The notes under the pieces were generated by a model. That model made no database searches. It had not been told where the DNA came from and saw only the letters and a list, made by a program, of their open reading frames with translations. A program made the position numbers and the translations under genes. From Octopus sinensis (Eukaryota), in the NCBI RefSeq assembly GCF_006345805.1, contig NW_021835987.1:124001-188000 (forward strand): 64,000 nt of DNA. The letters are read 5' to 3'. Position 1 is the stretch's first letter; the number at the start of each line of letters is the position of its first letter. Positions 9,099-48,410 of this stretch are shown here, in pieces.

Positions 9099-9206
9099 AA
9101 CAGGTAATACTTGACTTATGCGGATCACCAGTGGTGGTCAGCTGGATTAGATGAACGTTAACAACATCAATAGTATCAATGGGTATCATGTGCTGTGTTA
9201 GTTCTG

Positions 9207-9680: not shown

Positions 9681-9829
9681 CTAAGGAGTTAGAAAAAGAA
9701 AAAAAACTTGTTTGGGTTTCAGAATATGAAAATCTAAACTTCTAGAAAACATACCATTATGTCTGCTATATGCAGTTAAATCAATCAGAATTTAATTAAA
9801 ATAGACATCTGTGTATCATACTTAATGTA

Positions 9830-13918: not shown

Positions 13919-14082
13919 TTGTGTCCCTTAATTGAGAATTCAATTCCGGTGGCTGAAGCCAGGTCGTTCCATGGTGAACTTTTCATGTTTTTATGAGAGA
14001 ACCAGCTTTCAATGGTTGTATTTCGTCCATTAAATATCATAGTTACCACATTTGTTTGGTTTTTGCTAATCACTAGTTTCAC
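13919..14082 (-). CDS. Gene A coding exon 3
   Basis: TTTTGCAG acceptor, GTATGT donor, 164 nt, phase 0->2; VKLVISKNQTNVVTMIFNGRNTTIESWFSHKNMKSSPWNDLASATGIEFSIKGH. Confidence 0.88.
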
Positions 14083-14191
14083 CTGCAAAAGAAATGAACA
14101 TGTAGACACGTAAAACCGCTAAAGTGACGGGGACATAAACACACCAGCATCGGTTGTCAAGCAATGCTGGGGGACAAACATAGACACACAA

Positions 14192-14244
<53 letters not shown>

Positions 14245-14989
14245 TACGACAGGCTTCTTTCAGTTTCCGTCTACCAAATCCACTCACAAGGCATTAGTCG
14301 GCACTGGGCTATAGCAGAAGACACTTGCCCAAGATGCTACGCAGTGGGACTGAACCCGTAACCATGTGGCTGGTAAGCAAGCTACTTACCACACAGCCAC
14401 TCCTGCGCCACACGTTAGCACTCGCATAATGAAAAATAATTGGATCAAGTTAAAGAGATCGAGATACTTTAAATATATTTCTTTAGTTGTTAGTCTATTT
14501 TCCAATCATTTTTATTACATCCTTCCTTTGAGAAAATCGAATCTGTATAACCCGCGAAATTAACGATTTTTATTTGTCACTCACCTAATAGGTATCTTAC
14601 CATCCATAAATGTATCAAATAATATATATTTAATTACCCTTCGCTTGGAAATTTCCTTTGGTAATGTTATGAAAACACAGGATCTCATAGTGTTCCATTC
14701 CAAGCTGCATGACGAAATGTGGTAACAATAACAAACTTCTGCTACTAAAATACACCTCCTAATACACAAATAATCCATGCGTTTTTAGCCCCATTACACG
14801 CACATTGTATGTGTATTTACGTCTGTGTATGTGTGTGTGTATTTCACTCCTACCACTTGACAAATGGTTTCCTTGTGTTGATGTCCCCCGTAACATAGCG
14901 GTTCGTCCAAAGAAATTGATAGAATATATACAAGAGTATTAGTTCTACTAAACCCATGGCCGGAGTCCAATGACTGAAGCAGGCAACAT

Positions 14990-15033
<44 letters not shown>

Positions 15034-15210
15034 AGAGTTTACGAAAAAACAAAAGACGAAGACAGGTGGCGTACAAAACAAACAGATGTATTAGTATAAC
15101 GCTCAGGAATAGAAAAAAGTCATTTATGTTTCGAGCCTACGCTCTTCTACAGAAAGGGACACAGAAAAAACAAAGAGAGAAGAAAATGTGTGTAGCGGCT
15201 AACGATCTAT

Positions 15211-15363
<153 letters not shown>

Positions 15364-16349
15364 ATGGCTGCTAGATCAATCATTGTCTGCTAAATAGAGT
15401 TAATAGAATTAATGAAAACTAATGCTTCTACCCACAAAAATGTGTAGCAATCTATCCATGAGAGAAAATATTGAAACGTTAAGTTTAGTTGTCAGATATA
15501 TAGGAGAAAAACACACGATATGTCTTCTTCATTTCCTTAACTCTATGTAGAGTACAGGACACCAGTAACAGATCGCTATAGGCTGGTAAATTTGGCAATG
15601 AATTGCAGTTATCCCCAGGTCTTGCCATCAACCATTTCTTCAGTTTCTGTTGAGCTTTTCCATGTTTTATTTAATCTGTCACGCTTCTGCCTTCCTTGCG
15701 ATATTGATCGGATGGCTTGCCTTGTAAAATCAGAAAGAGTTTTCCGTTCGATGTGTCCTAGCTAACCTCATTCCTTGCTCCTGATCTGAGATCCCGTAGG
15801 TTACTGGCTCACATGTTCCCACAAGATTTTGTTTGTTACTCAATTTTGCCACCCCACAAGAAGAACAAGATTATTCAAATTTGAGATCAAGTCCCACCCA
15901 GGTCCTCCAGCTTTACTTTATGCTGGGTTCAATAAAACTTTGACCATTCATGTATCGTAAGTTGATTTCATCGATTTTGTTTCCCATTTACTGACCACTC
16001 CCCCAAAGGGGAGTCTTTTGTCTATGATAATTATTATTATTACTGCGGTTTGTCACGGATAAAAATTCTTACCACCTTCTACGTGGATCATAGTCCCCCG
16101 TCTGTTGCTCGGTGTTCCCGTCTACGCCTATAAGTTTAATTCTAAACCTAATTATAAATAGCTCTGCCTGAGTATAGTCTTCTTATATATATGGGTGTAT
16201 GTATATGTACTGCTGTGTGTATATGTGTGCGCATATACCTGAATTTGTTTCTTTTTCATGTATACTTGACCAAAGTCTGTTAATCATTATTACTATCATT
16301 ATGAAAATAATGGTACTGTATGAACTTGCTCGCACGTATGAATACATAC

Positions 16350-16528
16350 CTCATCAATTGGAAGATAGATCCAGAAATCAAGGAGAGGGTGTCGGAAGAA
16401 GTTAGGACAAAAGTCATTTCTGCATTCGTCCATATTCCAGGATGAAGGATGTCCTATATTCAGAAATGAATTATAAACTTTTGAACCAGCTCCTTTTGAT
16501 ATGGTATAGGTTTTAATCCATTGGCTAT
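16350..16528 (-). CDS. Gene A coding exon 2
   Basis: TTTCAG acceptor, GTATGT donor, 179 nt, phase 1->0; (Y)SQWIKTYTISKGAGSKVYNSFLNIGHPSSWNMDECRNDFCPNFFRHPLLDFWIYLPIDE; frame continuous with exons 1 and 3. Confidence 0.88.
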
Positions 16529-16535
16529 CTGAAAT

Positions 16536-16593
<58 letters not shown>

Positions 16594-17050
16594 TTAATAA
16601 TAATAATTCTTTTATTCTTTTATTTGTTTTAGTCATTTTACTGTGGCTGTGCTGGAGCAACACATTTTGTCGAGCAAATCAACCCCAAGACGTATTCTTT
16701 GTAAGCCTAGTACTTATTCTATCGGTCTGTCTTGCGCATTGAAGTTGGGGGGACAAATACAGACACACAAACATTATACATATCCATCCATCCATCCATA
16801 CATACATACATACATACATACATACATACATACATACATACATACATACATACACACACACAAACACACACATACACACACACACACACATATATATATG
16901 ACTGGCTTCTGTCACTTTCCATCTACCAAATCCACTCCCAAGGCTTTGGTCGGCTCGAGGTTATAGTAGAAGACACTTGCCCAAGTTGCCACGCTATGGG
17001 GACGGCATCAAGAACTATGTGCTTGGTAAGCAAGCTACTTACCACACATC

Positions 17051-17110
<60 letters not shown>

Positions 17111-17111
17111 C

Positions 17112-17159
<48 letters not shown>

Positions 17160-17161
<2 letters not shown>

Positions 17162-17611
17162 TGGACTACAGCAAAGATTCTGCTCAATACCACAGATTTG
17201 CTTGTCAGTTGTTTGACCGTAACCAGTTGAGCATGTCCCGTAGTGGCTGACGATATGTGCATCTCTGATCACGTGTAGAAGTAGTGGGGGATCATCATAG
17301 CCATGTGTTGAGAGGGGTCTTTGGGGTTTGAACAATTCACCTCTGTTTCATTCAACATCCTTAAACAACCCTTAATCAGGGACCTTTTGAGTGGGATGGG
17401 TTACCGAACCAGAAGAAAATTCTAACTGGGCCCCTCTTGCAAGGTCATGCACTGTTTATCTTGATATGAGATTCCCATGTTGCGAACAATTGGTTGTGAT
17501 GCATGTGCCTAGTGTACCCTCATCAGACGGTTATACCCATCATGGGTATACTGAACTTCGTATATTTGTACCCAAGAGTCACTTTGATGGCATGCACTGC
17601 TCTCTTAATCA

Positions 17612-17691
<80 letters not shown>

Positions 17692-18245
17692 GCCCTGATG
17701 CAGTACCAGGCAGTGGCTCTCATGGCTTCTGATCTTAATTGATTGGAAGTGTCATCACGTACATTGTTTTGTCTTGGTATAAAAGATGGGCTACAGAAAA
17801 TATTCTGCTCAATACCACAGATTTGCTTGTCAGTTGTTTGACCGTAACCAATTGAGCATGTCCCTTAGTAGCTAACGATATGTGCAACACTGATCACGAG
17901 CAGAAGTAGTGGGGGAGCATCATAGCCATGTGTTGAGAGGGATTCTTTGGGGTTTGAATAATTCACCTCTGGACACATGGGTGGTTCTTTCAGCATCCTT
18001 AAACAACCCTTATTCAGGGACCTTTGAGCGGGATGGGCTACTCAACCTGAAGAAAATTCTAACTGGGCCCCACCTGCAAGGTCATGTGCTGTTTATCTTG
18101 ATATGAGATCACCATGTCGCGCACATATGGTTGTGATGCATGTGCCTGGTGTACCCTTATCAGACGGGTAGTCATAATGGGTATACTGGGCTTCGTATAT
18201 TTGTACCCCAGTGTCACTTTGATGGCATGCACTGCTCTCTCACTC
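17160..18245 (+). repeat. Two tandem non-coding repeat units separated and flanked by (TAA)n (gene A intron 1)
   Basis: ~440-bp and ~555-bp related units (17160-17600, 17690-18245) ending ...ttgatggcatgcactgctctct + (aat)n; inverted copies at 39620-40085 and 37845-38400. Confidence 0.75.
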
Positions 18246-18246
18246 A

Positions 18247-18285
<39 letters not shown>

Positions 18286-18286
18286 G

Positions 18287-18344
<58 letters not shown>

Positions 18345-19878
18345 TATTATAATAATAATAATGATAATAATGATAATAATGATTTCATGTATTTGCCACC
18401 ACGTCGAAGAATAAGGGGGACAAAACAGTGAAAACCTTAAATTGTTGAGGTTTACATATAATGAAAAGCTAATAAAGGAAAGTAAAATCATCAACAGACT
18501 CCATAACATTCATCTTAAGTCTTTTCCTGGCCTGGGTATCGCATGTGATACACAAGACATATTTCGTCTGTTTCCATGCATCATCTGCTATACAAGTTCT
18601 CATCTTGGGCTTTTGGGAAAGAAAACATTTATATGATTCAGAGATTTACATAAAGAAGAGCTAAATTAAACTGTGCACGTTTAGGGCAAACATATAAACA
18701 GGCTTTCGACAGGCAAAGGGTTAGATACTATTTTTGAAAAATTAGGGCAGATCCGTGATTTAATGCCAATGGGATACAAGCTAGAAGTTGTTCAACCCCA
18801 GTTGGGTGAACTGGATTAGGATGTGTGATGCTGACGGCCCCGCCTCTACACGCATACAAACCCCAGAGACCTAAGAAAAATATCTGGTGCTTTCTCTAAG
18901 AATATATATCTTGGGATTTTCTAATTTAGACAATGCCTGAAATATGAGGGTGTGGGTTATAAGTTGTTATGGAGCCAAGAATTTCACTGATATTTTATTT
19001 TATCGATCAGGGTAAGATGACAGGTAAAGTTGACCTCAGCGTGATCTAGTCTGAGAAACCTACAGGATTAATAAAGCAAATAATATTTTAACGAGTATGC
19101 CAATCCACCTTGCTCCCCACCTGCGCACGTGTGAAAACCCATCGTGTGTGTGTGTGTTGGGGAAGAGTCCCGTAAATCTATGATAAAATTCAGCTCCCAA
19201 TTGAGCTCAGTTTACACTGTTTCCCTTAATATACCCATGTGTATTCCTAACTGAAAGGGTCCTGCTACTCTGTTTCAACAAATTCAGTCTGAACCCTACT
19301 TTCGGAATGCAAGCAGAATTTTTGAAATCAAAATTTATACCCCAAATTGTAGGTCGACTTATACACCAAGACGACTTTGGAACCAAAAGGAAATTTCTAT
19401 GTGAAATGCTGTAAGATTTCGGAAGATAGAGACGATGTTTAAATGCTTACACTACATGATTATGCCATTCACTTTGTCGGATTCTATGCTGTAAAATTCG
19501 TTACTGCTTTGCTTTTTTCTTTCTCTTTGTGTTAAATGTTGCTTCGAGTGTATCTGCAACGGATATCGTAGATTACGATTCTTCAAATTATATCCTTCTT
19601 CACAAACACGTAATTATCTCTCATTATGTCCTCCCCTCTTCTCCTCCATTGTCCAATCCCCTTTCACATGTTCATCTTCTCAGTACCCTCTCACCTCCAT
19701 CAGTCCACTTTAACATTCCACTTACATTCACCTTCCGATAGCCCGCGGGTGTTCCCAGCAAAGTTTCAACATCTTTTCGTCGTCTGTCTGTCTTTTTGTC
19801 TCTCCCTCTTTCTCATTCTCTCATTATATCTCTCTCTCTCTCTGTCAATCACTCTCTCTCCCCCCCTCTCTCTGTATG

Positions 19879-19939
<61 letters not shown>

Positions 19940-20088
19940 GAAAGAAATGGAGTAATAACTGTTAGAAATGCATCATGTGTGTTTTAAAATCCTTTAATAA
20001 CGATGAGAATATGCTTAGAGGAACTACCACCAACCGCGTAAAACGAAAAAAAACACCACGACATTAACAATAAGGAAGCTCTACTTAC

Positions 20089-20386
20089 ATCTATAGAAGG
20101 CAATCTCGTTGCTGTCACTCGTGCTGACGACTGTCATTATATCTTTCGGTGAGTAATTCTTACAAACACGGCTGACTTCGTTGTAAGTAAAGAATTCTGA
20201 TTGGCTGTTTAGAGCATAGAAGGCACATTCCGGTAGACTTTCTCTCTTATAGAATTTTTCCGATGGATTCGTCTGAAGGTATCCATAAGAGTAACCAGGA
20301 GGCAAACGTTTGTAGTAAGCATCATGAAATTCCTGAGCAAAGGCAACCGCTAGAATTATTGTCAATGTTAACAGCTGCACTGCCAT
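20089..20386 (-). CDS. Gene A coding exon 1 (signal peptide + PAN/apple-like segment)
   Basis: ATG at 20386 in context GCAATGG; encodes MAVQLLTLTIILAVAFA|QEFHDAYY...ECAFYALNSQSEFFTYNEVSRVCKNYS...AFYR plus 1 nt; ends at a GTAAGT donor (phase 1). 298 nt. An upstream polypyrimidine-CAG acceptor (~20470) implies a further non-coding 5' exon. Confidence 0.9.
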
Positions 20387-21081
20387 TGCAGCTGGACAAG
20401 TAAAAGGGAACTGGGACATTCTTGGCCCTAATATCAATGGGAAATGTTTAAGAGTAAGGCGGAGTAATCCTGAAAGAGAAGAGGAAGATAATTTGAGAAG
20501 ATGGAAAATGTTTGCGTGTAAGAGGAAGAATGTTTGTAAAAGAAAACGCTAAACGAATAAATTACAATTTAGAAGAGAAAAAATAAAATAAATTAAGGTG
20601 ATTCCTAAAGGCATAGGTCCTGGGTATGATTTTAAACTGTATCCAGCAGTGATCCCTGGTTGGGGATTTCTAGCGTTTTGACGAATTTTGGAACCAGCTC
20701 TTAGCCACCGATGTCCCAAGATCTAGTCTGACCCGGAGTAGTAGTGGTCGTCAAGGTTCTAATTATGGTTTAATTAGTAATTCCTTCGACCGGATGGAAC
20801 TCATCATCCAGGTGGTAGTGAGACAACCCTTCTAGAAGATGGAAAACGCTGATTCCAAACCCCCGATAACTTGCAACAATATTCAATCATGGGAAAGTGT
20901 TCGGGTGAAAATACTCGGGTAAAATTGAGAATCAGAGACAAAGGGGCAGTTCGATGCTGTCTTCAACCTCACCCCTGCACATCCTGTGTCGATGCTGTTA
21001 ACAAATTGTAGGGTTCCTTTCTGTTCTTTTAGACCTGTTAATGAGATTGAGATGATGGACACACTACATGGGCAACAACCT

Positions 21082-21310
21082 ATTTCTTTATTACCCATAA
21101 GGGGCTAAACACAGGGAGGACAAACAAGAACAGACAAACGGATTAAGTCGATTATATCGATCACAGTGCGTAACTGGTACGTATTTAATCGACCCCGAAA
21201 GGATGAAAGCTAAGTCGACCTCGGCGGAATTTGAACTCAGAACGTAACGGCTGACGAAATACGGCTACGCATTTCGCCCGGCGTGCTAACGATTCTGCCA
21301 GCTCGACGCC
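21082..21310 (-). mobile_element. SINE family 1
   Basis: 18-bp TSD at 21064-21081 and 21311-21328. Confidence 0.8.
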
Positions 21311-21580
21311 CTACATGGGCAACAACCTGTCCTCCGTACCACACTGCTCTGGTTAATGTCATATCGAATACATTATACTAGAAATATAGAACCGGATATC
21401 ACACCGGTGATGAACATAACAATTCAATCAACACAGCCTGAAAATGCAGATACGTGGCAGGGACTGCCATTTGCACAGAGTGCTGTTCAGAGACAGACAA
21501 CGATGGTCTGATAGGGCAGGAAATTACGGGCTTCATACATGGTCATTAACGAGGAACTGAGATGCAGGCTTTGCCTTTCG

Positions 21581-21638
<58 letters not shown>

Positions 21639-34397: not shown

Positions 34398-34460
<63 letters not shown>

Positions 34461-34733
34461 CGAAAGGCTGAGCCTGCATCTCAGTTCCTAATTAATGACC
34501 ATGTATGAAGCCCGTAACTTCCTGCCCTATCAGACCATCGTTGTCTGTCTCTGAACAGTACTCTGTGCAAATGGCAGTCTCTGCCACGTATCTGCATTTT
34601 CAGGCTGTGTTGTTCGAATTGTTATGTTCTTCTTCACCGGTGTGATATCCGGTTCTATATTTCTAGTATAATGTATTCGATATGACCCCAACCAGAGCCG
34701 TGTGGTACGGAGGACAGGTTGTTGCCCATGTAG

Positions 34734-34963
34734 GGCGTCGAGCTGGCAGAATCGTTAGCACGCCGGGCGAAATGCGTAGCCGTATTTCGTCAGCCGTTAC
34801 GTTCTGAGTTCAAATTCCGCCGAGGTCAACTTAGCCTTTCATCCTTTCGGGGTCGATTAAATAAGTACCAGTTACGCACTGGGATCGATATAATCGACTT
34901 AATTCGTTTGTCTGTTCTTGTTTGTCCTCCCTGTGTTTAGCCCTTTGTGGGCAATAAAGAAAT
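34734..34963 (+). mobile_element. SINE family 1
   Basis: 18-bp TSD at 34716-34733 and 34964-34981. Confidence 0.8.
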
Positions 34964-35657
34964 AGGTTGTTGCCCATGTAGTGTGTCCATCATCTCAATC
35001 TCATTAACAGGTCTAAAAGAAGGAAAGGAACCTTACAATTTGTTAACAGCATCGACACAGGATTTGCAGGGGTGAGGTTGAAGACAGCATCGAACTGCCC
35101 CTTTGTCTCTGATTCTCAATTTTACCCCAGTATTTTCACCCGAACACTTTCCCATGATTGAATATTGTTGCAAGTTATCGGGGGGTTGGAATCAGAGTTT
35201 TCCATCTTCTAGAAGGGTTGTCTCACTACCACCTGGATGATGAGCTCCATGCGATCGAAGGAATTACTAATTAATCCATAATTAGAACCTTGACGACCAC
35301 TACTACTCCGGGTCAGACTAGATCTTGGGACAGCGGTGGCTAAGAGCTGGTTCAAAAACTCGTCAAAACACTAGAAATCCCCAACCAGGGATCACTGCTG
35401 GATACAGTTTAAAATCATACCCAGGACCTATGCCTTTAGGAATCACCTTAATTTATTTTATTTTTTCTCTTCTAAATTGTAATTTATTCATTTAGCGTTT
35501 TCTTTTACAAACATTCTTCCTCTTACACGCAAACATTTTCCATCTTCTCAAATTATCTTCCTCTTCTCTTTCAGGATTACTCCGCCTTACTCTTAAACAT
35601 TTCCCATTGATGTTAGGGCCAAGAATGTCCCAGTTCCCTTTTACTTGTCCAGCTGCA

Positions 35658-35955
35658 ATGGCAGTGCAGCTGTTAACATTTACAATAATTCTGGCGGTTG
35701 CCTTTGCTCAGGAATTTAATGATGCTTACTACGAACGTTTGCCTCCTGGTTACTCTTATGGATACCTTCAGACGAATCCATCGGAAAAATTCTATAAGAG
35801 AGAAAGTCTACTGGAATGTACTGGCATCGCTCTACAGAGCCAATCAGAATTCTTTACTTACAACGATGTCAGCCGTGTTTGTAAGAATTACTCACCGAAA
35901 GATATAATGACAGTCGTCAGCACGAGTGACAGCAACGAGATTGCCTTCTATAGAT
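35658..35955 (+). CDS. Gene B coding exon 1 (signal peptide + PAN/apple-like segment)
   Basis: ATG at 35658; MAVQLLTFTIILAVAFA|QEFNDAYYE...LECTGIALQSQSEFFTYNDVSRVCKNYS...AFYR plus 1 nt; GTAAGT donor; 298 nt; upstream acceptor CTCTTTCAG ending at 35574. Confidence 0.9.
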
Positions 35956-36107
35956 GTAAGTAGAGCTTCCTTATTGTTAATGTCGTGGTGTTTTTTTTTT
36001 CTTTTTACGCGGTTGATGGTAGTTCCTCTCAGCATATTCTCATCGTTATTAAATGACTTTGAAACACACTTGATGCACTTCTAACAGTTATTACTCCATT
36101 TTTTTTC

Positions 36108-36144
<37 letters not shown>

Positions 36145-37657
36145 CAGAGAGAGAGAGAGAGTGGGGGGAGAGAGAGTGATTGACAGAGAGAGAGAGATAT
36201 ATAATGAGAGAATGAGAAAAAGGGAGAGACAAAAAGACAGACAGACGACGAAAAGATGTTGAAAATTTGCTGGGAACACCCGCGGGCTATCGGAAGGTGA
36301 ATGTAAGTGGAGTGGTAAAGTGGACTGGTGGAGGTGAGAGGGTACTGAGAAGATGAACATGTGAAAGGGGATTGGACAATGGAGGAGAAGAGGGGGGAAC
36401 ATAATGAGAGATAAATACGTGTTTTTGAAGGAGGATATAATTTGAAGAATCGTAATCTACGATGTCCGTTGCAGACACACTCGAAGCAACATTTAACACA
36501 AAGAGAAAGAAAAAAGCAAAGCAGTAACGTATTTTACAGCATAGAATCCGACAAAGTGAATGGCATAATCATGTAGTGTAAGCATTTAAACATCGTCTCT
36601 ATCTTCCGAAATCTTACAGCATTTCACATAGAAATTTCCTTTTGGTTCCAAATTCGTCTTGGTGTATAAGTCGACCTACAATTTGTGGTATAAATTTTGA
36701 TTTCAAAAATTCTGCTTGCATTCCGAAAGTAGGGTTCAGACTGAATTTGTTGAAACAGAGTAGCAGGACCCTTTCAGTTAGGAATACACATGGGTATATT
36801 AAGGGAAACAGTGTAAACTGAGCTGAGTTGGGAGCTGAATTTTATCATAGATTTACGGGACTCTTTCCCAACACACACACACTCAAGATGGGTTTTCACA
36901 CGTCCGCAGGTGGGGAGCAAGGTGGATTGGCATACTCGTTTAAAATATTATTTGCTTTATTAATCCTGTAGGTTTCTGAGACTAAATCACGCTGAGGTCA
37001 ACTTTACCTGTCATCTTACCCTGATCGATAAAATAAAATATCAGTGAAATTCTTGGCTCCATAACAATTTATAACCCACACCCTCCTATTTCAGGCATTG
37101 TCTAAATTAGAAAGTCCCAAGATATATATTCTTAGAGAAAGCACCAGATATTTTTCTTAGGTCTCTGGGGTTTGTATGCGTGTAGAGGCGGGGCCGTCAG
37201 CATCACACATCCTAATCCAGTTCACCCAACTGGGGTTGAACAAATTCTAGCTTGTATCCCATTGGCATTAAATCACGGATCTGCCCTAATTATCCAAAAA
37301 TAGTATCTAACCCTTTGCCTGTCGAAAGCTTGTTTATATGTTTGCCCTAAACGTGCACAGTTTAATTTAGACCTTCTTTATGTTAATCTCTGAATCACAT
37401 AAATGTTTTCTTTCCCAAAAGCCCAAGATGAAGACTTGTATAGCAGATGATGCATGGAAACAGACGAAATATGTCTTGTGTATCACATGTGATACCAAGG
37501 CCAGGAAAAGACTTAAGATGAATGTTATAGAGTCTGTTGGTGATTTTCTTTCCTTTATTAGCTTTTCATTATATGTAAACCTCAACAATTTCAGGTTGTC
37601 AGTGTTTTGTCTCCCTTATTCCTCGACGTGGTGGCAAATACATGAAATCATTATTAT

Positions 37658-37742
<85 letters not shown>

Positions 37743-37747
37743 TTATT

Positions 37748-37807
<60 letters not shown>

Positions 37808-38398
37808 GTTATTATTATTATTATCATTATTATTATTATTATTGTGTGAGAGAGCAGTGCATGCCATCAAAGTGACCCTGGGGTACAAATATACGAAGCC
37901 CAGTATACCCATCATGACTACCCGTCTGATAAGGGTACACCAGGCACCTGCATCACAACAATATGTGCGCGACATGGTGATCTTATATCAAGAAAAACAG
38001 CACATGACCTTGCAGGTGGGGCCCAGTTAGAATTTTCTTCAGGTTGAGTAGCCCATCCCGCTCAAAAGGTCCCTGAATAAGGGTTGTTTAAGGATGTTGA
38101 AAGAACCACCCATGTTTCCCGAGGTGAATTATTCAAACCCCAAATAATCCCACTCAAAACATGGCTATGATGCTCCCCCACTACTTCTGCTCGTGATCAG
38201 AGATGCACATATCGTTAGCCACTAAGGGACATGCTCAACTGGTTAAGGTGAAACAACTGACAAGCAAATCTGTGGTATTGAGCAGAATATTTGCTGTAGC
38301 CCATGTTTTATACCAAGACAAAACAATGTACATAATAACACTTCCAATCAATTAAGATCAGAAGCCATGAGAGCCACTGTCTGGTACTGCATCAGGGC

Positions 38399-38475
<77 letters not shown>

Positions 38476-38483
38476 TTATTATT

Positions 38484-39547
38484 CTATGTTTGACTTTTGC
38501 TTTATGTCTGTACAAGTTGGCTCCAAGTCTCACCCAGAGACCTCAAGAGACAACAGGTTAGAAGTTCTGTGCCATATATTTGGGGTTTTTTTTTTTTTTT
38601 TTTCTGGTGTTGTACTAGTGAATGTCTAATACATAAAAAAAAATAATAAATAAATAAAAAAATAAATTAAAGAAATAAAAAAAAAGTTTGTTTTAAACCT
38701 TGGGATTACATAGAGAGTATTTTGCGTAGGATATGAGCAGTTCCCATGAGCACTATCTTTTGAATTTCTGCCATTTTGGGGTTTCCTGGTATCTGAGTTA
38801 GGTAGCAATCAGTCGCTTTCGCTATCATTCCCAGGGCACCTATGACAACAGGTATTGTTTTAGTCTTCAGCTTCCACATTTTGCTGATTTCTATTTCAAG
38901 ATATTTATATTTGCTCAGTTTCTGGTAGATCTTGACAGATACGTTTATATCGATTGGGACAGTCATATCAATGAGGAGGCATGTTCTTTTTCTGAAGCCT
39001 TTCAATATAAAGTCTGGCCTATTTGCATCTATCTTCCTGTCAGTTTGAATGGTGAAGTTCCAGAGGAGTGAGATGTGGTCATTTTCAAGCACAGGAGGTG
39101 GATTGTGTTCCCACCAGTTTTTTTCATGGGGCAAATCCAGGTTTTTGCAAATTACCCAGTGAATATATTGTGCAGCTCTATCATGCCTACTGAGGTACAC
39201 TGTAGGCGCTAGAAGACTGCATTTGGAGACAACATGGTCAATGGCTTCATTTTGTTGTCGGCATACACGACATGTTGGGCTACTGCCGTTCTTTAATATG
39301 TTGGCCTGGTAGTTTCTTGTTGGTAGGCATTGATCTTGAGCTGCTATAATAAACCCATCTGTTTCAGATTTTAAGCCAGAGGCCATTAGCCAGGGTATTT
39401 GTCATAGAGAGGTTTTTCTTGCCATTTATTATTCAGAATATCTAAGGCTGCAGTTTTGGCACGGGTTTTCATGCGCCTAGCTTTTTCTGTGCTTGTTTCT
39501 TGTATATCTATCTCTAATTCCGAAATTGGTTGTATTCGGAATTCACT
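38484..39547 (-). mobile_element. R4/Dong-clade non-LTR retrotransposon 3' fragment (restriction-like endonuclease) in gene B intron 1
   Basis: GLKSETDGFIIAAQDQ, CCHC finger CRVC..EAIDHVVSKC, RHD, RPD..IDMTVP, K..KY, VIGALG; flanked on both sides by (TAA)n; absent from the matching (TAA)n at ~17610-17690 in gene A. Confidence 0.9.
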
Positions 39548-39564
39548 TATTATTATTATTATTA

Positions 39565-39605
<41 letters not shown>

Positions 39606-40081
39606 TACTACTACTACTACTGAGTGAGAGAGCAGTGCATGCCATCAAAGTGACACTGGGGTACAAATATACGAAGCCCAGTATACCCATGATGGGTATA
39701 ACCGTCTGATAACGGTACACTAGGCACATGCATCACAACCAAATGTTCGCAACATGGGAATCTCATATCAAGATAAACAGTGCATGACCTTGCAAGAGGG
39801 GCCCAGTTAGAATTTTCTTCTGGTTGGGTAACCCATCCCACTCAAAAGGTCCCTGATTAAGGGTTATTTAAGGATGTTGAATGAAACACCCAAGTTTTCA
39901 GAGGTGAATCATTCAAACCCCAAAGAATCCCACTCAACACATGGCTATGATGCTCCCCCACTACTTCTACTCGTGATCAAAGATGCACGTATCGTCAGCC
40001 ACTACGGGACATGCTCAACTGGTTACGGTCAAACACCTGACAAGCAAATCTGTGGTATTGAGCAGAATATTTGCTGTAGTC

Positions 40082-40171
<90 letters not shown>

Positions 40172-40645
40172 CATTGGATGTGTGGTAAGTAGCTTGCTTA
40201 CCAAGCACATAGTTCTTGGTGCCGTCCCCATAGCGTGGCAACTTGGGCAAGTGTCTTCTTCTATAACCTCGAGCCGACCAAAGCCTTGGGATTGGATTTG
40301 GTAGACGGAAAGTGACAGAAGCCAGTCATATATATATATGTGTGTGTGTGTGTGTGTTTGTGTGCGTACGTATGTATGTATGTATGTATGTATGTATGTA
40401 TGTATGTATGTATGTATGTATGTATGTATGGATGGATGGATGGATGGATGGATGGATATGTATAATGTTTGTGTGTCTGTATTTGTCCCCCCAACTTCAA
40501 TGCGCAAGACAGACCGATAGAATAAGTACTAGGCTTACAAAGAATACGTCTTGGGGTTGATTTGCTCGACAAAATGTGTTGCTCCAGCACAGCCGCAGTA
40601 AAATGACTAAAACAAATAAAAGAATAAAAGAATTATTATTATTAA

Positions 40646-40738
<93 letters not shown>

Positions 40739-40749
40739 CATTATTATTA

Positions 40750-40792
<43 letters not shown>

Positions 40793-40803
40793 CATTATTA
40801 TTA

Positions 40804-40843
<40 letters not shown>

Positions 40844-40854
40844 CATTATTATTA

Positions 40855-40890
<36 letters not shown>

Positions 40891-40961
40891 TATTATTATT
40901 ATTATTATTATTATCATTATTATTATTATTATTATTTTTATCATTATTATTAATATTTCAG

Positions 40962-41140
40962 ATAGCCAATGGATTAAAACCTATACCATATCAAAGGGAG
41001 CTGGTTCAAATGTTTATAATTCATTTCTGAATATAGGACATCCTTCATCCTGGAATATGGACGAATGCAGAAATAACTTTTGTCCTAACTTCTTCCGACA
41101 CCCTCTCCTTGATTTCTGGAACTATCTTCCAATTGATGAG
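40962..41140 (+). CDS. Gene B coding exon 2
   Basis: TTTCAG/GTATGT, 179 nt; (Y)SQWIKTYTISKGAGSNVYNSFLNIGHPSSWNMDECRNNFCPNFFRHPLLDFWNYLPIDE. Confidence 0.88.
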
Positions 41141-42124
41141 GTATGTATTCATACGTGCGAGGAAGTTCATACAGTACCATTGTTTTCATAATGATAGTAA
41201 TAATGTTTAACAGACTTTGGTCAAGTATACATGAAAAAGAAACAAATTCAGGTATATGCGCACACATATACACACAGCAGTACATATACATACAACCATA
41301 TATATAAGAAGACTATACTCAGGCAGAGCTATTTATAATTAGGTTTAGAATTGAACTTATAGGCGTAGACGGGAACACCGAGCAACAGACGGGGGACTAT
41401 GATCCACGCAGAAGGTGGTAAGAATTTTTATCCGTGACAAACCGCAGTAATAATAATAATTATCATAGACAAAAGACTCCCCTTTGGGGGAGTGGTCAGT
41501 AAATGGGAAACAGAATCGATGAAATCAACTTACGATACATGAATGGTCAAAGTTTTATTGAACCCAGCATAAAGTAAAGCTGGGGGACCTGGGTGGGACT
41601 TGATCTCAAATTTGAATAATCTTGTTCTTCTTGTGGGGTGGCAAAATTGAGTAACAAACAAAATCTTGTGGGAACATGTGAGCCAGTAACCTACGGGATC
41701 TCAGATCAGGAGCAAGGAATGAGGTTAGCTAGGACACATCGAGCGGAAACCTCTTTCTTATTTTACAAGGCAAGCCGTCCGATGAATATCGCAAGGAAGG
41801 CAGAAGCGTGACAGATTAAATAAAACATGGAAAAGCTCAACAGAAACTGAAGAAATGGTTGATGGCAAGACCTGGGGATAACTGCAATTCATTGCCAAAT
41901 TTACCAGCCTATAGCGATCTGTTACTGGTGTCCTGTACTCTACATGGAGTTAAGGAAATGAAGAAGACATATCGTGTTTTTCTCTTATATATCTGACAAC
42001 TAAACTTAACGTTTCGATATTTTCTCTCATGGATAGATGGCTACACATTTTGGTGGGTAGAAGCATTAGTTTTCATTAATTCTATTAACTCTATTTAGCA
42101 GACATTGATTTATCTAGCAGCCAT

Positions 42125-42173
<49 letters not shown>

Positions 42174-42359
42174 ACAGATCGTTAGCCGCTACACTCATTT
42201 TCTTCTCTCTTTGTTTTTTCTGTGTCCCTTTCTGTAGAAGAGCGTAGTCTCGAAACGTAAAAGACTATTTTCTATTCCTGAGCGTTATACTAATACATCT
42301 GTTTGTTTTGTACGCCACCGGTCTTCGTCTTTTGTTTTTTCGTAAACTCTCCCTATATA

Positions 42360-42410
<51 letters not shown>

Positions 42411-42416
<6 letters not shown>

Positions 42417-43318
42417 TTAGCAATTAAGGACAACTACTTAATAAGGAAAACTTAACAAGAAATTGTCAGGTAGATAGCGTAAAAACCTCATAAGAGAAAA
42501 AATTTCGAAAATAATTATTTCTTATTGAACATATTAATTTATATATAGAGGGCATTATACATACATGCCAGACGGCATTATACATACATGCCAAACGCTA
42601 AGAGGGACAATCAGTCATTTCTACCAAAAATATTACTAATCCCACCGAATGCAATTTTTCAAAGTAAGACATTTAAAAATATAGACCTGTATCACAGTGA
42701 TTTCATACTTACGTAATCATCAGCAGGCCTGAATGTATTATAAATAAACAACGACCCTGCCCCGCTTGAGCCGATCAGCTAACTGATCAACATCAACGAA
42801 GCACATGGGTGAGTTTATATATATTACATCCGGGTGAATGGCAAACTTTTACGAATTGCATTTCGGGAGAGGAAAAGTTTTTTCGGAATAAAAATTTAGC
42901 AATTAAGGACAACTACTTAATAAGGAAAACTTAACAAGAAATTGTCAGGTAGATAGCGTAAAAACCTCATAAGAGAAAAAATTTCGAAAATAATTATTTC
43001 TTATTGAACATATTAATTTATATATAGAGGGCATTATACATACATGCCAGACGGCATTATACATACATGCCAAACGCTAAGAGGGACAATCAGTCATTTC
43101 TACCAAAAATATTACTAATCTCACCGAATGCAAATTTTCAAAGTAAGACATTTAAAAATATAGACTTGTATCACAGTGATTTCATACTTTAAATGTCTTA
43201 CTTTGAAAAATTGCATTCGGTGGGATTAGTAATATTTTTGGTAGAAATGACTGATTGTCCCTCTTAGCGTTTGGCATGTATGTATAATGCCGTCTGGCAT
43301 GTATGTATAATGCCCTCA

Positions 43319-43328
<10 letters not shown>
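42411..43328 (-). mobile_element. Non-autonomous Penelope-derived element (tandem + inverted pLTR-like units) in gene B intron 2
   Basis: ~479-bp unit at 42411-42889, partial direct copy at 42890-43189, inverted partial copy at 43190-43328; inserted in a (TA)n tract that is simple in gene A (~15000-15030); contains a hammerhead motif. Confidence 0.7.
42684..42729 (-). ncRNA. Type I hammerhead ribozyme motif
   Basis: Minus strand GGCCTG-CTGATGA-TTAC-gtaa-GTAT-GAAA-TCACtGTGA-TA-CAGGTC; the first stem II pair is U-U. Confidence 0.7.
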
Positions 43329-43411
<83 letters not shown>

Positions 43412-43999
43412 TATATGTTGCCTGCTTCTGTCATTGGACTACGGCCATGGGTTTAGTAGAACTAATACTCTTGTATATATTCTATCAATTTCTTTGGACG
43501 AACCGCTATGTTACGGGGGACATCAACACAAGGAAACCATTTGTCAAGTGGTAGGAGTGAAATACACACACACATACACAGACGTAAATACACATACAAT
43601 GTGCGTGTAATGGGGCTAAAAACGCATGGATTATTTGTGTATTAGGAGGTGTATTTTAGTAGCAGAAGTTTGTTATTGTTACCACATTGCGTCATGCAGC
43701 TTGGAATGGAACACTATGAGATCCTGTGTTTTCATAACATTACCAAAGGAAATTTCCAAGCGAAGGGTAATTAAATATATATTATTTGATACATTTATGG
43801 ATGGTAAGATACCTATTAGGTGAGTGACAAATAAAAATCGTTAATTTGCAGGTTATACAGATTCGATTTTCTCAAAGGAAGGATGTAATAAAAATGAGTG
43901 GAAATTAGACTAACAACTAAAGAAATATATTTTAAAGTATCTCGATCTCTTTAACTTGATCCAATTATTTTTCATTATGAGAGTGCTAACGTGTGGGGC

Positions 44000-44351
44000 A
44001 GGGGGCTGCGTGGTAAGTAGCTTGCTTACCAACCACATGGTTCCGGGTTCAGTCCCACTGCGTGGCATCTTGGACAAGTGTCTTCTGCTATAGCCCCGGG
44101 CCGACCAATTTCTTGTGAGTGGATTTGGTAGACGGAAACTGAAAGAAGCCTGTCGTATATATGTATATATATATGTGTGTGTGTGTTTGTGTGTCTGTGT
44201 TTGTCCACCTAGCATTGCTGGTGTGTTCGGCAAATGAGACCGATAGAATAAGTACTGGGCTTACAAAGAAATTAGTCCCGGGTCGAGTTGCTCGACTAAA
44301 GGCGGTGCACCAGCATGGCCGCAGTCTACTGACTGAAACAAGTAAAAGAGT

Positions 44352-44360
<9 letters not shown>
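44000..44360 (+). mobile_element. tRNA-derived SINE family 2 with internal (TA)n(TG)n (representative copy)
   Basis: gtggtaagtagcttgc...gggttcagtcccactgcgtgg...(TA)n...gaaacaagtaaaagag tail. Other copies at about 4625-4875, 6150-6470, 10845-13560 (interrupted), 14120-14410, 16620-17050, 24960-25215, 26680-27620, 40185-40625, 45375-45780, 57225-58200 and 59655-59920. Confidence 0.8.
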
Positions 44361-44393
<33 letters not shown>

Positions 44394-44464
44394 TGTGTGC
44401 GTGTATGTATGCATGTGCGTGTGTGTGCGTGTCTATGTGTGCTACATGTTCATTTGTTTTGCAG

Positions 44465-44628
44465 GTGAAACTAGTGATTAGCAAAAACAAAACCGATGTG
44501 GTAACTATGATATTTAATGGACGAAATACAACCATTGAAAGCTGGTTCTCTCGGAAAAACTTGAAAAGTTCACCATGGAACGACCTGGCTTCAGCCACCG
44601 GACTTGAATTCTCAATTAAGGGATTCGG
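44465..44628 (+). CDS. Gene B coding exon 3
   Basis: TTTTGCAG/GTATGT, 164 nt; VKLVISKNKTDVVTMIFNGRNTTIESWFSRKNLKSSPWNDLASATGLEFSIKGF. Confidence 0.88.
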
Positions 44629-44941
44629 GTATGTTTATATATTTTCTTTTCTTGTGACGTAGACATTGTCTTGTTATGTAGAGACTTATAGATTTAAAAT
44701 CACTTTTCGTTTGTCTCTCATATATTTCAACGCTAAACATTTAAACGCGAAACGTTCTGAAGACGAACAACGCCTTTTCAGGCTTTCAACATTATATCTT
44801 CATTTATTATCATATACAGAATTCAAATGCGAGCAAATATAGCTTCCGTCGCTAAAATTGAAATCTATCGAGCCTTCTGGATACTGCAGCACAGGTGATT
44901 TGTTGAGAACAATTTTTCTCTATCAGTCGAGATTAAATAAT

Positions 44942-45329
44942 GGATGGAAGCACTCCGTTGGTTACGACGACGAGGGTTCCGGTTGATCCGAATCAACGGA
45001 ACAGCCTGCTCGTGAAATTAACGTGTAAGTGGCTGAGCACTCCACAGACGCGTGTACCCTTAACGTAGTTCTCGGGGATATTGAGCGTGACGCAGAGAGT
45101 GACAAGGCCGGCCCTTTGAAATACAGGTACAACAGAAACAGGAAGTAAGAGTGTGAGAAGGTTGTGGTGAAAGAGTACAGCAGGGATCACCACCATCCCC
45201 TGCCGGAGCCTCGTGGAGCTTTTAGTGTTTTCGCTCAATAAACACTCACAACGCCCGGTCTGGGAATCGAAACCGCAATCCTATGACCGCGAGTCCGCTG
45301 CCCTAACCACTGGGCAATTGCGCCTCCAA
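44942..45329 (-). mobile_element. tRNA-derived SINE family 3, gene B-specific insertion
   Basis: 14-bp TSD CGAGATTAAATAAT at 44928-44941 and 45330-45343; empty site in gene A at ~13612; head GGAGGCGCAATTGCCCAGTGGTTAGG...TTCGATTCC. Confidence 0.85.
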
Positions 45330-45602
45330 CGAGATTAAATAATACTTGGCATGTGGATGCCAAAAGCTATTTTACTCTTTACTCTTTACTCTTTTGCTTG
45401 TTTCAGTCACTTGACTGCGGCCATGCTGGAGCACTACCTTTAATCGAGCAACTCGACCCCGGGACTTAATCTTTTGTAAGCCCAGTACTTATTCTATCGG
45501 TCTCTTTTGCCGAACCGCTAAGTAACGGGGACATAAACACACCAGCATCGGTTGTCAAGCAATGCTAGCGGGACAAACACAGACACACAAACACACACAC
45601 GC

Positions 45603-45633
<31 letters not shown>

Positions 45634-46737
45634 CATATATACGACAGGCTTCTCTCAGTTTCCGTCTACCAAATCCACTTTCAAGGTTTTGGTCGGCCCG
45701 AGGCTATAGTAGAAAACACTTGCCATAGGTGCCATGTGGTTGGTACACAAGCTACTTACCACACAGCCACTCCTGCGCCGATGCTTTTCAAAAGAGACAG
45801 AAATACTGATTTAGCAACCCCGCTGCCGCTGCTAGAGACTCTTTATCTCTTACTAATACATTTCTGTATTTTCAACACCACACGTCTAAATGATATGCTT
45901 TCTCTTCACCAATTGTGTAGTTTCTTGGCTTTCGCGTCAAAAGGCATGTTTTAAAGTGCGAAACACGAAAATATACATTCACCTTAAAATGAATACTATT
46001 ATTAAATTTATTTGTCTCTGTTCCTTTTAAGTATTATTACATTCCATTATATTTATTTCACTTGGCGCTTTGCTAAGATGTTCAACACGGGAAAATATTA
46101 TCGTTTATATGTTCGAGCGTTTTGTAGATTTTTTGCTAAATTGTATGCCTCGTGTGTACTTTTGCCTTTCCTTACATTTTCACTTTTGCACAAATCTGCG
46201 CGCGCGTGTGTGTGTATGTATGTGTGTGCATATGTGTCTGCCTGTGAGTGTGCGTTTGCGTATGTCTGTATTTCTGTATATATGTCGTTTATATGTATGT
46301 GAGTGCTTACGAACTCATATTTGGTGTAAGATCGATCTCATTTGAAATGAAATCTATAGACGGGCCTGTGGGCTGCCACTGCACATTCTAACATATACGT
46401 AGCATACATAACGTATATACAATCTCGACAGGCCAGTTACTGCAATATTTGTGTCCTGAAATAACATCTTTTGCTCTCACTGGCCGCTGCTGGAAGGAAT
46501 TTCGGTGTCTATCCGATAGACAGCAAATCCATAATACATGCTATTTCAGGAAAAATACTTCAGTAAATAGTCTATCGCGAGTGTGTTTATACATTAAGTA
46601 TGATACCCAGATGGCTATTTTAATTAAATTCTGATTGATCTAACTGCATATAGCAGACATAATGGTATGTTTTCTAGAAGTTTAGATTTTCATATTCTGA
46701 AACACAAACAAGTTTTTTTCTTTTTCTATCTCCGTAG

Positions 46738-46898
46738 TCTTACACGTCGCTTCTATATAACAATACCTGGTAATTGTAACGGGGACAGTGGCTGGTTGGC
46801 CATCATTGAGGCGACAGGTGGCTGTCAGTGGGAAAAGTCAGATCACTACCCTTTAATTCGTTATTCTGATACAAAATCGAAAGTCATATGGAACAACG
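46738..46898 (+). CDS. Gene B coding exon 4
   Basis: CCGTAG/GTAAGT, 161 nt; (G)LTRRFYITIPGNCNGDSGWLAIIEATGGCQWEKSDHYPLIRYSDTKSKVIWNN. Confidence 0.88.
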
Positions 46899-47160
46899 GT
46901 AAGTGATATTGTATCTTCTGTGTGTGCGTTTGTCTTACTGTGAGTAGTAGTACTAAATGTTAATTTTGTACTTATTGTTTAGCGGCCAATCTGCCTTGAT
47001 TCAACTGATTTATATTCAAAGGCGTTCCAACAATGACCGACCCACAAAACGATGCAGAGATTCGGCTGCCATTTCTAGTAATTCGAGTGATCACGTATAA
47101 AGTACTCCCACGATATATTTCAATACCTTTGGTTGTTAATGTTGTTGTTGTTACTTGCAG

Positions 47161-47216
47161 GTTATGGATTAGCAGACTCCATGGCCATATTCATCCGCCT
47201 GAGGCAGCAGAACTAA
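47161..47216 (+). CDS. Gene B coding exon 5 (terminal)
   Basis: TTGCAG acceptor; (G)YGLADSMAIFIRLRQQN-TAA. Spliced CDS 858 nt = 285 aa, intact. Confidence 0.85.
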
Positions 47217-47315
47217 CCCAGCACATGATACCCATTGATACTATTGATGTTGTTAACGTTCATCTAATCCAGCTGACCACCACTGGTGAGCCGCATAAGT
47301 CAAGTAATACCTATT

Positions 47316-47321
47316 AATAAA
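47316..47321 (+). promoter_or_regulatory. Candidate polyadenylation signal of gene B
   Basis: AATAAA 100 nt after the stop codon; conserved in gene A. Confidence 0.55.
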
Positions 47322-47464
47322 GAATCCATACAAATATTCTATCCAGCATCGGTCTTTTGAGTTGTGATTTTCATTATCTTTTCTACAGACAGAGAGAGAA
47401 AGAAAGAGAGAAAGAGCGACAGAGAGATACAGAGTTGTTGTTATTCCAGCTTACGAGTGTCCAG

Positions 47465-47508
<44 letters not shown>

Positions 47509-48182
47509 AGTTGTGTGTATGTGTGCGTGTGTGTAGATATTTGAGGACTTGTCTCTGTATTGTGCGAAAACTGCCAGCAAATGAAGATTATCTGAACTAT
47601 CTATACTACAATGGAGAAAACTTCTTATTAATTAGGCATGTGACGATAATTAAAGTACTAAAAAAACGCAATTATTAAAGGGCTAACTGTCTGGAAATAT
47701 TTTTAAAGAAATTTCCCATAACTTCCATTTCTCAAGTTTCTTGGAGTATTTTTCAACTCTCATTTCTCGCAAATTTAAATATTCATTGCATTCACTGTGT
47801 CCAGTTAATCACAAATTAAAATATTCTTTGCATTCCCTGCGTCCAATTAATCACAAATTTAAGTATTCTTTGCATTGACTGAAGAGTATTCTATTCTCAT
47901 TTGCAATGCCTCTCACTTACTATTTTAAATTTTTATTTGCTATTTGGAAAACCGACAGTTTATTCTATTAATATAATGCGTAATTTATTATTTATTGAAT
48001 GGAAATTTTTAAAATACCCGTATAATTTTTGAATGTGGGATAGCTCTGAGAAGAACCTCGAAATTTGGCTTATTACTCTTAGAAGACAAGAAGAAAACAT
48101 TTCCGACAAATACTCGAAACCTGCACCTTATTCACGGTTTCCCAATACTCTGTTCCACTAAACCAATATTTACACAAGTTGG

Positions 48183-48410
48183 CGGCGAGCTGGCAGAACC
48201 GTTAACAGGGCGGGCGAAATGCGTAGCCATATTTCGTCTGCCGCTACGTTCTGAGTTCAAATTCCGCCGAGGTATATTTTGCCTTTCATCCTTTCGGGGT
48301 GGATTAAATAAGTACCAGTTACGCACTGGGGTCGATATAATGGACTCAGTCCGTTTGTCTGTCCTTGTATGTCTCCTCTATGTTTAGCCCCTTGTGGGTA
48401 GTAAAGAAAC
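48183..48410 (+). mobile_element. SINE family 1 (other copies 7225-8205 interrupted, 48665-48722 partial, 56065-56295, 56300-56480, 63720-63895)
   Basis: Same head and central motif. Confidence 0.75.

Follow-up and report, generated by a model that had tools for sequence, protein, structure and literature searches.

We analysed a 64,000-nt window of Octopus sinensis DNA (RefSeq assembly GCF_006345805.1, contig NW_021835987.1, positions 124,001 to 188,000 of the forward strand) that carries two copies, A and B, of a five-exon gene. Exon 4 of these copies is a hotspot of divergence, real and statistically robust, in which amino acid replacements have accumulated several-fold faster than changes in the introns, and the rest of the gene is conserved. 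Judged by their sequences, A and B are members of an octopus-specific family of secreted proteins, and the explanation that we favour, with modest confidence, is that after gene duplication diversifying selection acted on a short and probably exposed stretch of the secreted protein.

Exon 4 diverges faster than the introns

The exons were mapped with octopus homologues (tblastn placed all five) and by reading of the splice sites. Both copies have five exons with canonical GT/AG sites and frames open over 888 nt; in copy B, the 888-nt coding sequence, stop included, encodes 295 amino acids, with frame and splice sites intact. The two genes are oriented head-to-head, copy A on the minus strand and copy B on the plus strand. 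The segments compared are the following.

46738..46898, plus strand: exon 4 of copy B (phase 1 nt + 53 codons + 1 nt; TAG acceptor, GTAAGT donor)
46738..46845, plus strand: variable part of B exon 4, nt 1-108, codons 226-261, 21/108 differences from A
46796-46831, plus strand: core of the B variable part, 9 B-unique substitutions in 36 nt
46846..46898, plus strand: conserved part of B exon 4 (YPLIRYSDTKSKVIWNN), 1 difference in 53 nt from A
46899..47160, plus strand: intron 4 of copy B, with 12/262 mismatches and one 4-nt indel relative to A
9520..9680, minus strand: exon 4 of copy A, 161 nt

The original prediction, made from the letters of the window, held that exon 4 is about three times more divergent than the intron beside it, and its counts were reproduced. 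The two exons, both of 161 nt, differ at 22 positions (13.7%), against 12 mismatches over 262 aligned sites and one 4-column indel in intron 4. Seventeen codons within the exon differ, all 17 nonsynonymously and none in a purely synonymous way, and the junction codon changes as well (AA/G, Lys, in A; GG/T, Gly, in B). The quoted peptide pairs were all located where they had been placed, GHKFN/GFGLT crossing the exon 3/4 junction. In a 12-sequence alignment, where identity to copy B is 87% for copy A and 60-71% for the other paralogues, the exon 4 changes cluster around invariant residues, as had been claimed: Cys238, Gly243-Trp244, Glu249 and Cys254.

Clean non-coding DNA differs between A and B at 314 of 8684 sites (3.6%), and against this background the 22/161 differences of exon 4 have a binomial P of 1e-7. 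Exon 4 ranks first among the 8042 sliding 161-nt windows of the 13.5-kb A/B alignment, the two runner-up windows adjoining indels or falling in low-complexity DNA. The excess is limited to nt 1-108 of the exon, where 21 of 108 positions differ, about five times the divergence of the surrounding DNA, compared with 1 in the last 53 nt; relative to the two flanks (20/507), Fisher P is 3e-7. Successive 50-nt intron bins hold 3, 1, 2, 1, 1 and 2 mismatches upstream and 0, 1, 1 and 3 downstream, that is, a divergence peak without shoulders, with no gradient towards the flanks and sharp at both edges. These abrupt edges argue against linked old divergence. A distinct mutational spectrum in exon 4 was considered and rejected, the transition/transversion spectrum being that of the introns.

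Replacements are concentrated in three short patches

By the Nei-Gojobori method, exon 4 has a nonsynonymous divergence (dN) of 0.172 and a synonymous divergence (dS) of 0.048, giving a dN/dS ratio (omega) of 3.55, and its variable part has dN 0.25, dS 0.07 and omega 3.44. Values are dN 0.02-0.06 and dS 0-0.044 in exons 1-3 and 5, and dN 0.070 and dS 0.041 over the whole gene. The 1.5 synonymous differences counted in exon 4 come solely from two multi-hit codons. The dS of exon 4 matches the intron rate, and its replacement sites have changed 5-7 times faster: measured against the non-coding 3.6%, the 19.5 replacement differences over 127 sites of exon 4 have P = 1.8e-7, and the 18.5 nonsynonymous differences over 87 sites of its variable part P = 2e-9. 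The sliding-window analysis that the original prediction had proposed located two maxima in the proportion of nonsynonymous differences (pN), about 0.12 at codons 46-90 and, over codons 196-285, a peak of 0.19, which is 5.3 times the intron rate.

The second cluster of changes announced for exon 1 was found as described and is called HV1 here. A further patch, HV2 (codons 224-227, HKFN versus FGLT), is formed by 5 nt from the end of exon 3 together with 7 nt from the start of exon 4.

35811..35837, plus strand: HV1 in exon 1 of copy B, LECTGIALQ, codons 63-71; counterpart in A, PECAFYALN, at 20233-20207
44624..44628, plus strand: last 5 nt of B exon 3, TTCGG, versus CACAA in A (13923-13919); forms part of HV2

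HV2 is unbroken in the mRNA and is split in the genome by a well-conserved intron of 2.1 kb (B) or 4.2 kb (A). Its being contiguous only in the mRNA points to selection at the protein level.

The course of events that we propose is as follows. A and B would be young inverted duplicates within a birth-and-death array. After the duplication and before the split of O. sinensis and O. vulgaris, both lineages would have fixed bursts of amino acid replacements, which hit three patches, at codons 63-71, 224-227 and 235-261, the last two mostly encoded by exon 4. The patches would correspond to loops and to alternate residues of one beta-strand, adjoining an invariant Trp and an invariant Cys pair. 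The likeliest cause would be positive diversifying selection on a contact surface, by which every new copy may gain a different binding specificity.

Timing and polarity of the exon 4 changes

The relatives used for comparison were copy C of O. sinensis and copies V1, V2, X and Y of O. vulgaris, with X and Y as outgroup DNA; positions outside the window are given on locus L001 (O. sinensis), L002 (O. vulgaris, V1/V2) or L003 (O. vulgaris, X/Y). V1 is the orthologue of A, from which its exon 4 differs by 1 nt. V2 is a tandem copy whose A-type exon 1 carries a stop codon (L002 20145-20474), and X and Y, a more distant pair, map to the same chromosome at a distance of about 370 kb. Immediately to the left of the window, and in tandem with A, is copy C (L001 26883-40126), whose upstream region is window positions 1-827. 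Its exon 1 is of the B type (98% amino acid identity), its exon 2 has an in-frame stop, and its exons 3-4 are only 62-68% identical to those of A and B; it is a mosaic and probably a pseudogene.

L003 5010-5170 and 15475-15635, O. vulgaris: exon 4 of X and Y

In the three-way comparison of A, V1 and B, the branch that separates B from A and V1 has a non-coding divergence of 2.4% and 21 exon 4 changes. The A-only branch has 1.07% and 1 change, and the V1-only branch 0.84% and none. With 21 changes before speciation and 1 and 0 since, the burst predates the species split and then stopped in the A lineage. When the changes were polarised with X, Y and C, about 11-13 appeared as derived in B (nt 30-94) and about 8-10 as derived in the ancestor of A and V1 (nt 1-7, 100-107 and 149). 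A shares its 36-nt core with V1 (0 mismatches), Y (1) and X (3). The core of B has its 9 unique substitutions, no match at <=6 mismatches was obtained for it in the six loci searched, and the 5' end of B exon 4 is the same as in Y. Over the variable 108 nt, divergence is 19.4% for A-B, 14.8% for B-Y and 12.0% for A-Y; in the flanking introns it is 3.2-4.7% for A-B and 14-33% between clusters.

The original prediction had named, as a result that would speak for conversion, the grouping of one exon 4 with a distant paralogue whose silent sites are equally diverged; this grouping was observed for neither A nor B. On these sequence comparisons, exon 4 of A and exon 4 of B are two long branches from a common ancestral sequence. 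The pattern is repeated independently by a second young pair, X/Y, which differs by 13.0% in the variable 108 nt versus 7.3% and 3.8% in the flanking introns (P = 0.003-0.009).

Gene conversion, neutral change and the case against selection

Several observations weigh against diversifying selection and are taken here together with the explanations that they would favour. The family clearly undergoes gene conversion or mosaicism, and along the gene the differences between A and B are over-dispersed, with a variance/mean ratio of 4.1. The silent divergence of the variable part (0.07 for A-B) is also indistinguishable from the values between clusters (0.08-0.15), so that the age of the exon 4 difference rests on the flanking introns. 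Accordingly, the exon 4 and HV1 differences could be older than their flanks, conversion or unequal crossing-over having homogenised the introns and conserved exons and selection having removed the tracts that homogenised the patches. Copy C, which is 96.5% identical to B in the 5' 3.4 kb and about 80% around exon 4, is the kind of mosaic that such exchange would leave. HV1 haplotypes are identical base for base between non-orthologous copies, the B type occurring in C (window 35808-35840, L001 from 27066) and the A type in V2 (window 20240-20200, L002 from 20324); the B type is 3 mismatches from a distant paralogue (the P0009 gene), so the A type looks derived, with 8 changes in 27 nt. Protein P0007 of O. 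sinensis resembles an orthologue of O. bimaculoides P0003 in exons 3-5, with 95, 76 and 90% identity in exon 3, the variable region and the tail, and its exon 1 is 72% identical to that of P0003 and 93-96% to those of its O. sinensis neighbours. This likeness to the neighbours indicates that exon 1 evolves in concert within the species. Divergence between A and B is itself patchy, about 1.8% in mid-gene, across exon 2 and intron 2 (40450-43900 versus 16800-14500), and 3.5-5% elsewhere. This low-divergence region may be a more recent A/B conversion tract; the longest identical run of A and B, 247 nt, lies at 43442-43688.

We nevertheless consider such preserved old differences unlikely. They predict raised neutral divergence in linked sites, but mismatches fall immediately to 1-3 per 50 nt in the flanks, and the 3' third of the exon shows 1 difference in 53 nt. 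Three separate islands of 5-110 nt would be needed, and lineage-specific derived patches on an otherwise common ancestral sequence are better explained by bursts than by ancient, equidistant lineages. Under the explanation by old differences, too, there is selection for diversity, which preserves differences instead of driving a recent burst.

Conversion could also have been the direct source of the changes, if the core of B, and perhaps the patches of A, had been copied as short tracts from an unsampled paralogue or pseudogene elsewhere in the genome. Copies are numerous in the family, several being unannotated or broken (B, C and V2), conversion is active in it, and the single states Ser242, Ala246 and Trp256 recur in other paralogues. 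We regard this origin as quite unlikely. No donor was present among the 34 annotated proteins of three species or, at <=6 mismatches, in the six loci. By tblastn at E <= 10, the 64-kb window has no exon copies beyond A and B, and copy C is the only exon 4-like match in the adjoining 24 kb. Neither stretch therefore contains additional exon 4-like cassettes or the partial donor cassettes of a templated diversification of the variable lymphocyte receptor (VLR) or chicken immunoglobulin (Ig) type. Only chance-level k-mer matches were found as a local template for template switching to the core of B. A tract of at most about 65 nt would be required, and conversion merely moves differences, leaving the nonsynonymous excess to be explained by selection in the donor lineage.

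The remaining observations against selection bear on whether the changes have adaptive meaning at all. Sixteen of the 22 exon 4 changes have another change within 3 nt, and adjacent multi-nucleotide changes can mimic positive selection. The test on the ratio of nonsynonymous to synonymous differences (N:S; dN > dS), taken alone, gives marginal significance (Fisher P 0.045-0.16), since the silent sites of exon 4 number only about 32. Copy B (35625-47213) has no annotated protein in the NCBI gene set, its sister copies C and V2 carry stop codons, and the variable sites are the least constrained in the family. The patches might thus be unconstrained and reflect clustered multi-nucleotide mutations or the decay of a non-functional B, which we judge very unlikely. 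Neutral sites cannot outpace the neutral rate, yet replacements in the patches run at 5-7 times the intron rate and silent sites at the intron rate. B keeps its intact 295-codon frame and canonical splice sites, with a dN in exon 2 below the neutral rate. The A lineage changed too, A is conserved between species, and the transition/transversion spectrum does not depart from that of the introns.

The variable residues in the family and in a structure model

Selection on a binding segment is also consistent with the behaviour of the same sites in other family members. Among ten other full-length paralogues, variability is highest at the positions where A and B differ (mean entropy 1.71 versus 0.78 bits, P = 2e-10), and this holds in the wider superfamily too (P = 3e-6). 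Mean pairwise identity in residues 213-262 is 42%, versus 66-72% elsewhere, and the patch is bracketed by the invariant residues C238, G243, W244, E249, C254 and P263. Family matches comprise 34 proteins, which come exclusively from O. sinensis, O. bimaculoides and O. vulgaris and have E values down to 6.5e-64. A and B have in common with the family the five-exon structure and a length of about 295 amino acids, at 60-80% identity to its members. The family includes the records LOC118768577-80, LOC118761921 and LOC106882800, "uncharacterized protein", and UniProt gives one member the label "Apple domain-containing protein". Literature searches on octopus with Apple or PAN domains returned nothing, and one on positive selection in O. 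sinensis nothing relevant.

The product consists of a hydrophobic, signal-peptide-like segment, a weak PAN/Apple-like region and a beta-rich C-terminal domain of about 140 amino acids. On B exon 1, PAN_3 scores 14.9 bits against a cut-off of 21.1, and the best E values among 20 family members are 6.8e-4 for PAN_3 and 0.052 for PAN_1. The mature exon 1 region has two conserved cysteines, C65 and C86, where four to six are expected of PAN/Apple, and in the AlphaFold2 (AF2) model its predicted local distance difference test score (pLDDT) is below 50.

Structures were modelled for the full-length homologue P0001 and then, with a 73-sequence alignment, for P0030 (LOC118761921), an annotated O. sinensis protein that corresponds to copy A exons 2-4 joined to copy C exon 5 and contains the domain of copy A. 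The P0001 model is poor in its N-terminal half (pLDDT 59). The AF2 model of P0030 has a pLDDT of 92.6 and a predicted template-modelling score (pTM) of 0.85, and was read by secondary structure, confidence and strand periodicity. Twenty of the 28 A/B differences in the domain fall in P0030 residues 82-119. The variable residues occupy loop 79-85, positions 93-94 and 97, loop 107-112 up to the invariant Cys112, and positions 114-119; on strand 100-106 the even positions 100, 104 and 106 vary, position 102 being the invariant Trp. A recognition patch exposed on the protein would be expected to have such a layout. From the model we infer that the variable residues share a surface, which may be the ligand-binding surface proposed by the original prediction.

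The C-terminal domain of about 140 amino acids, which exons 2-5 of both copies encode, is widespread, with 982 representative clusters at E <= 1e-3 in a profile search. It occurs in amphioxus, starfish, crinoids and clams, in up to four repeats in mosaic proteins of amphioxus, echinoderms and bivalves, and its partners are ZP, EGF, TSP1, C-type lectin, F5/8C, SUEL, PAN and VWD modules. Pfam has no model for it, PDB sequences searched with a profile gave 0 matches at E <= 10, and the fold search with the P0030 model gave nothing significant in PDB (best E 0.47, template-modelling score (TM) <= 0.29) or in BFVD.

Three candidate identities were rejected. A fibrinogen-like domain had been prompted by the C...GW...C, ...MAIFIR motif and by a first Foldseek run, in which the low-confidence P0001 model gave weak but consistent matches to fibrinogen-related domains (FReD), at best with E 0.012, TM 0.3-0.43 and a root-mean-square deviation of 9-10 A. 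The high-confidence model has no such similarity (P0030 core domain versus FGL1: E 2.7, TM 0.29/0.21), and Fibrinogen_C has no match at E <= 10 in 20 members. For a galectin or concanavalin-like lectin fold, the best PDB matches were congerin II and galectins, at E 0.47-1.5 and TM 0.16-0.25. DUF7922 gave a weak whole-protein match in one amphioxus relative that is not collinear with the domain repeats.

Organisation of the locus

The window is eukaryotic DNA with 64% A+T and many microsatellites, and its positions 1-26433 match scaffold VCDQ01006028.1 of the O. sinensis assembly GCA_006345805.1 at 100% identity. Its comparison with itself revealed a large inverted duplication, 8119-21628 versus 48273-34414, whose arms carry the two genes.

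8119..21628, minus strand: gene-bearing arm A of the inverted duplication, from self-comparison
34414..48273, plus strand: second arm (B) of the inverted duplication, 3.6% divergent from arm A in clean non-coding DNA
20089..20419, minus strand: copy A exon 1, by homologue mapping
16350..16528, minus strand: copy A exon 2, by homologue mapping and splice sites
13919..14082, minus strand: copy A exon 3, by homologue mapping and splice sites
9201..9253, minus strand: copy A exon 5, TAG at codon 294
35625..35955, plus strand: copy B exon 1, signal peptide and weak PAN/Apple-like region
40962..41140, plus strand: copy B exon 2, by homologue mapping and splice sites
44465..44628, plus strand: copy B exon 3, by homologue mapping and splice sites
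47161..47213, plus strand: copy B exon 5, carries the stop codon

The duplication unit, of about 21 kb, comprises the gene and a downstream "module" and forms the inverted pair 1236-21628 (minus) and 34414-62685 (plus). The module is present a third time between the genes (22134-28151), and the spacer contains short inverted repeats (22137-23674 versus 29458-27935; 29500-30136 versus 32226-31593).

This arrangement raises the question of whether A and B could be haplotypes of one locus mis-joined as an inverted repeat, which would make the exon 4 difference allelic. The window is on an unplaced 342-kb scaffold, its arrangement is palindromic, and the 30-kb O. vulgaris locus shows only tandem copies and no inverted one. 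We hold such an assembly artefact to be extremely unlikely, given that the arms differ by 3.6% and by kb-scale insertions, that the 12.8 kb separating them hold the third copy of the downstream module, and that both species have several real copies.

In copy A, exon 5 carries a TAG (9209-9207, minus strand) three codons ahead of the usual stop of the family (IRLR* versus IRLRQQN*). The O. vulgaris orthologue V1 carries the identical exon 5 TAG (L002 10277-10330), so the truncation is old and apparently tolerated. The gene model LOC118761921 joins A exons 2-4 to C exon 5 across 30 kb (L001 10001-40129), and the NCBI models for P0001 and P0002, 243 and 101 kb long, likewise extend over other copies; all three are either annotation chimeras or products of read-through splicing between tandem copies.

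Further insertions and repeats were noted in the window. A 7-kb insertion 3' of B (48273-55333), not present 3' of A, may be a mobile-element remnant. Its open reading frames (ORFs) at 49277-50224 and 51688-52572 (both plus strand; 315 and 294 amino acids) have no Pfam match, nor have the ORFs inside the copy-specific insertions in general. Intron 3 of A has a 2.2-kb A-specific insert (about 10910-13109) with a 171-amino-acid ORF at 11644-12159. Intron 1 of B has a 1.2-kb insert (38392-39591), and intron 2 of B a 302-bp repeat at 99% identity (42409-42710 versus 42888-43189), its copies 479 bp apart. An (ATT)n tract lies immediately 5' of exon 2 (40620-40950), and a perfect repeat tract with a 6-nt period at 57815-58033.

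Relation to known systems

The phenomenon is already known in kind, exons outpacing introns in young duplicates of secreted-protein genes; it is the gene family and the domain that are uncharacterised. Duplicated venom and reproductive genes of this sort include the phospholipase A2 isozymes of snake venom glands, the mature-peptide exons of cone-snail conotoxins and abalone lysin. As in these, the copies described here are young and encode secreted proteins, introns and signal-peptide regions are conserved, and a short segment shows nearly only replacements, with dN > dS. Unlike them, the octopus genes belong to an unnamed, octopus-specific family, and the accelerated part is about 36 codons inside a larger conserved domain.

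Diversified recognition families of invertebrates, such as the FREPs of molluscs, the C1q-domain proteins of bivalves and the VCBPs of amphioxus, are likewise lineage-specific expansions of secreted proteins with variability centred on the part presumed to bind. In mosaic proteins of amphioxus and echinoderms, the wider superfamily of the C-terminal domain is found together with lectin-type modules (C-type lectin, F5/8C, SUEL); the octopus fold, unlike that of FREPs, is not fibrinogen-like. Another parallel is exon 7 of RHD/RHCE, an "island of divergence" between converting duplicates that is treated by Innan's two-locus model of conversion with selection. Here too, divergence peaks at a short coding segment of otherwise homogenised duplicates and conversion is active, but the A/B peak has no shoulders in flanking non-coding DNA and the differences are lineage-specific derived states.

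With diversifying selection as the favoured cause, the octopus family might, more broadly, constitute a diversified recognition repertoire (immune, gamete or chemical) built on a previously undescribed extracellular domain of metazoans, in which the hypervariable loops and the strand face near the invariant Trp and a disulfide would be a new type of ligand site and each duplication would bring an adaptive shift in specificity. This broader proposal is tentative, and we think it somewhat doubtful.

The locus provides a clean, replicated case of a coding segment that diverges several-fold faster than its own introns inside a cluster otherwise in concerted evolution. The domain, well folded in the model, found across invertebrates and without annotation or structural relative, is a worthwhile target for structural and binding studies. 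To our knowledge, cephalopods have no adaptive immunity and their recognition molecules are little known; an octopus-specific tandem family of secreted proteins, in which about 36 codons near an invariant Trp and disulfide change rapidly in each new copy, is a concrete candidate for a diversified repertoire of binding molecules.

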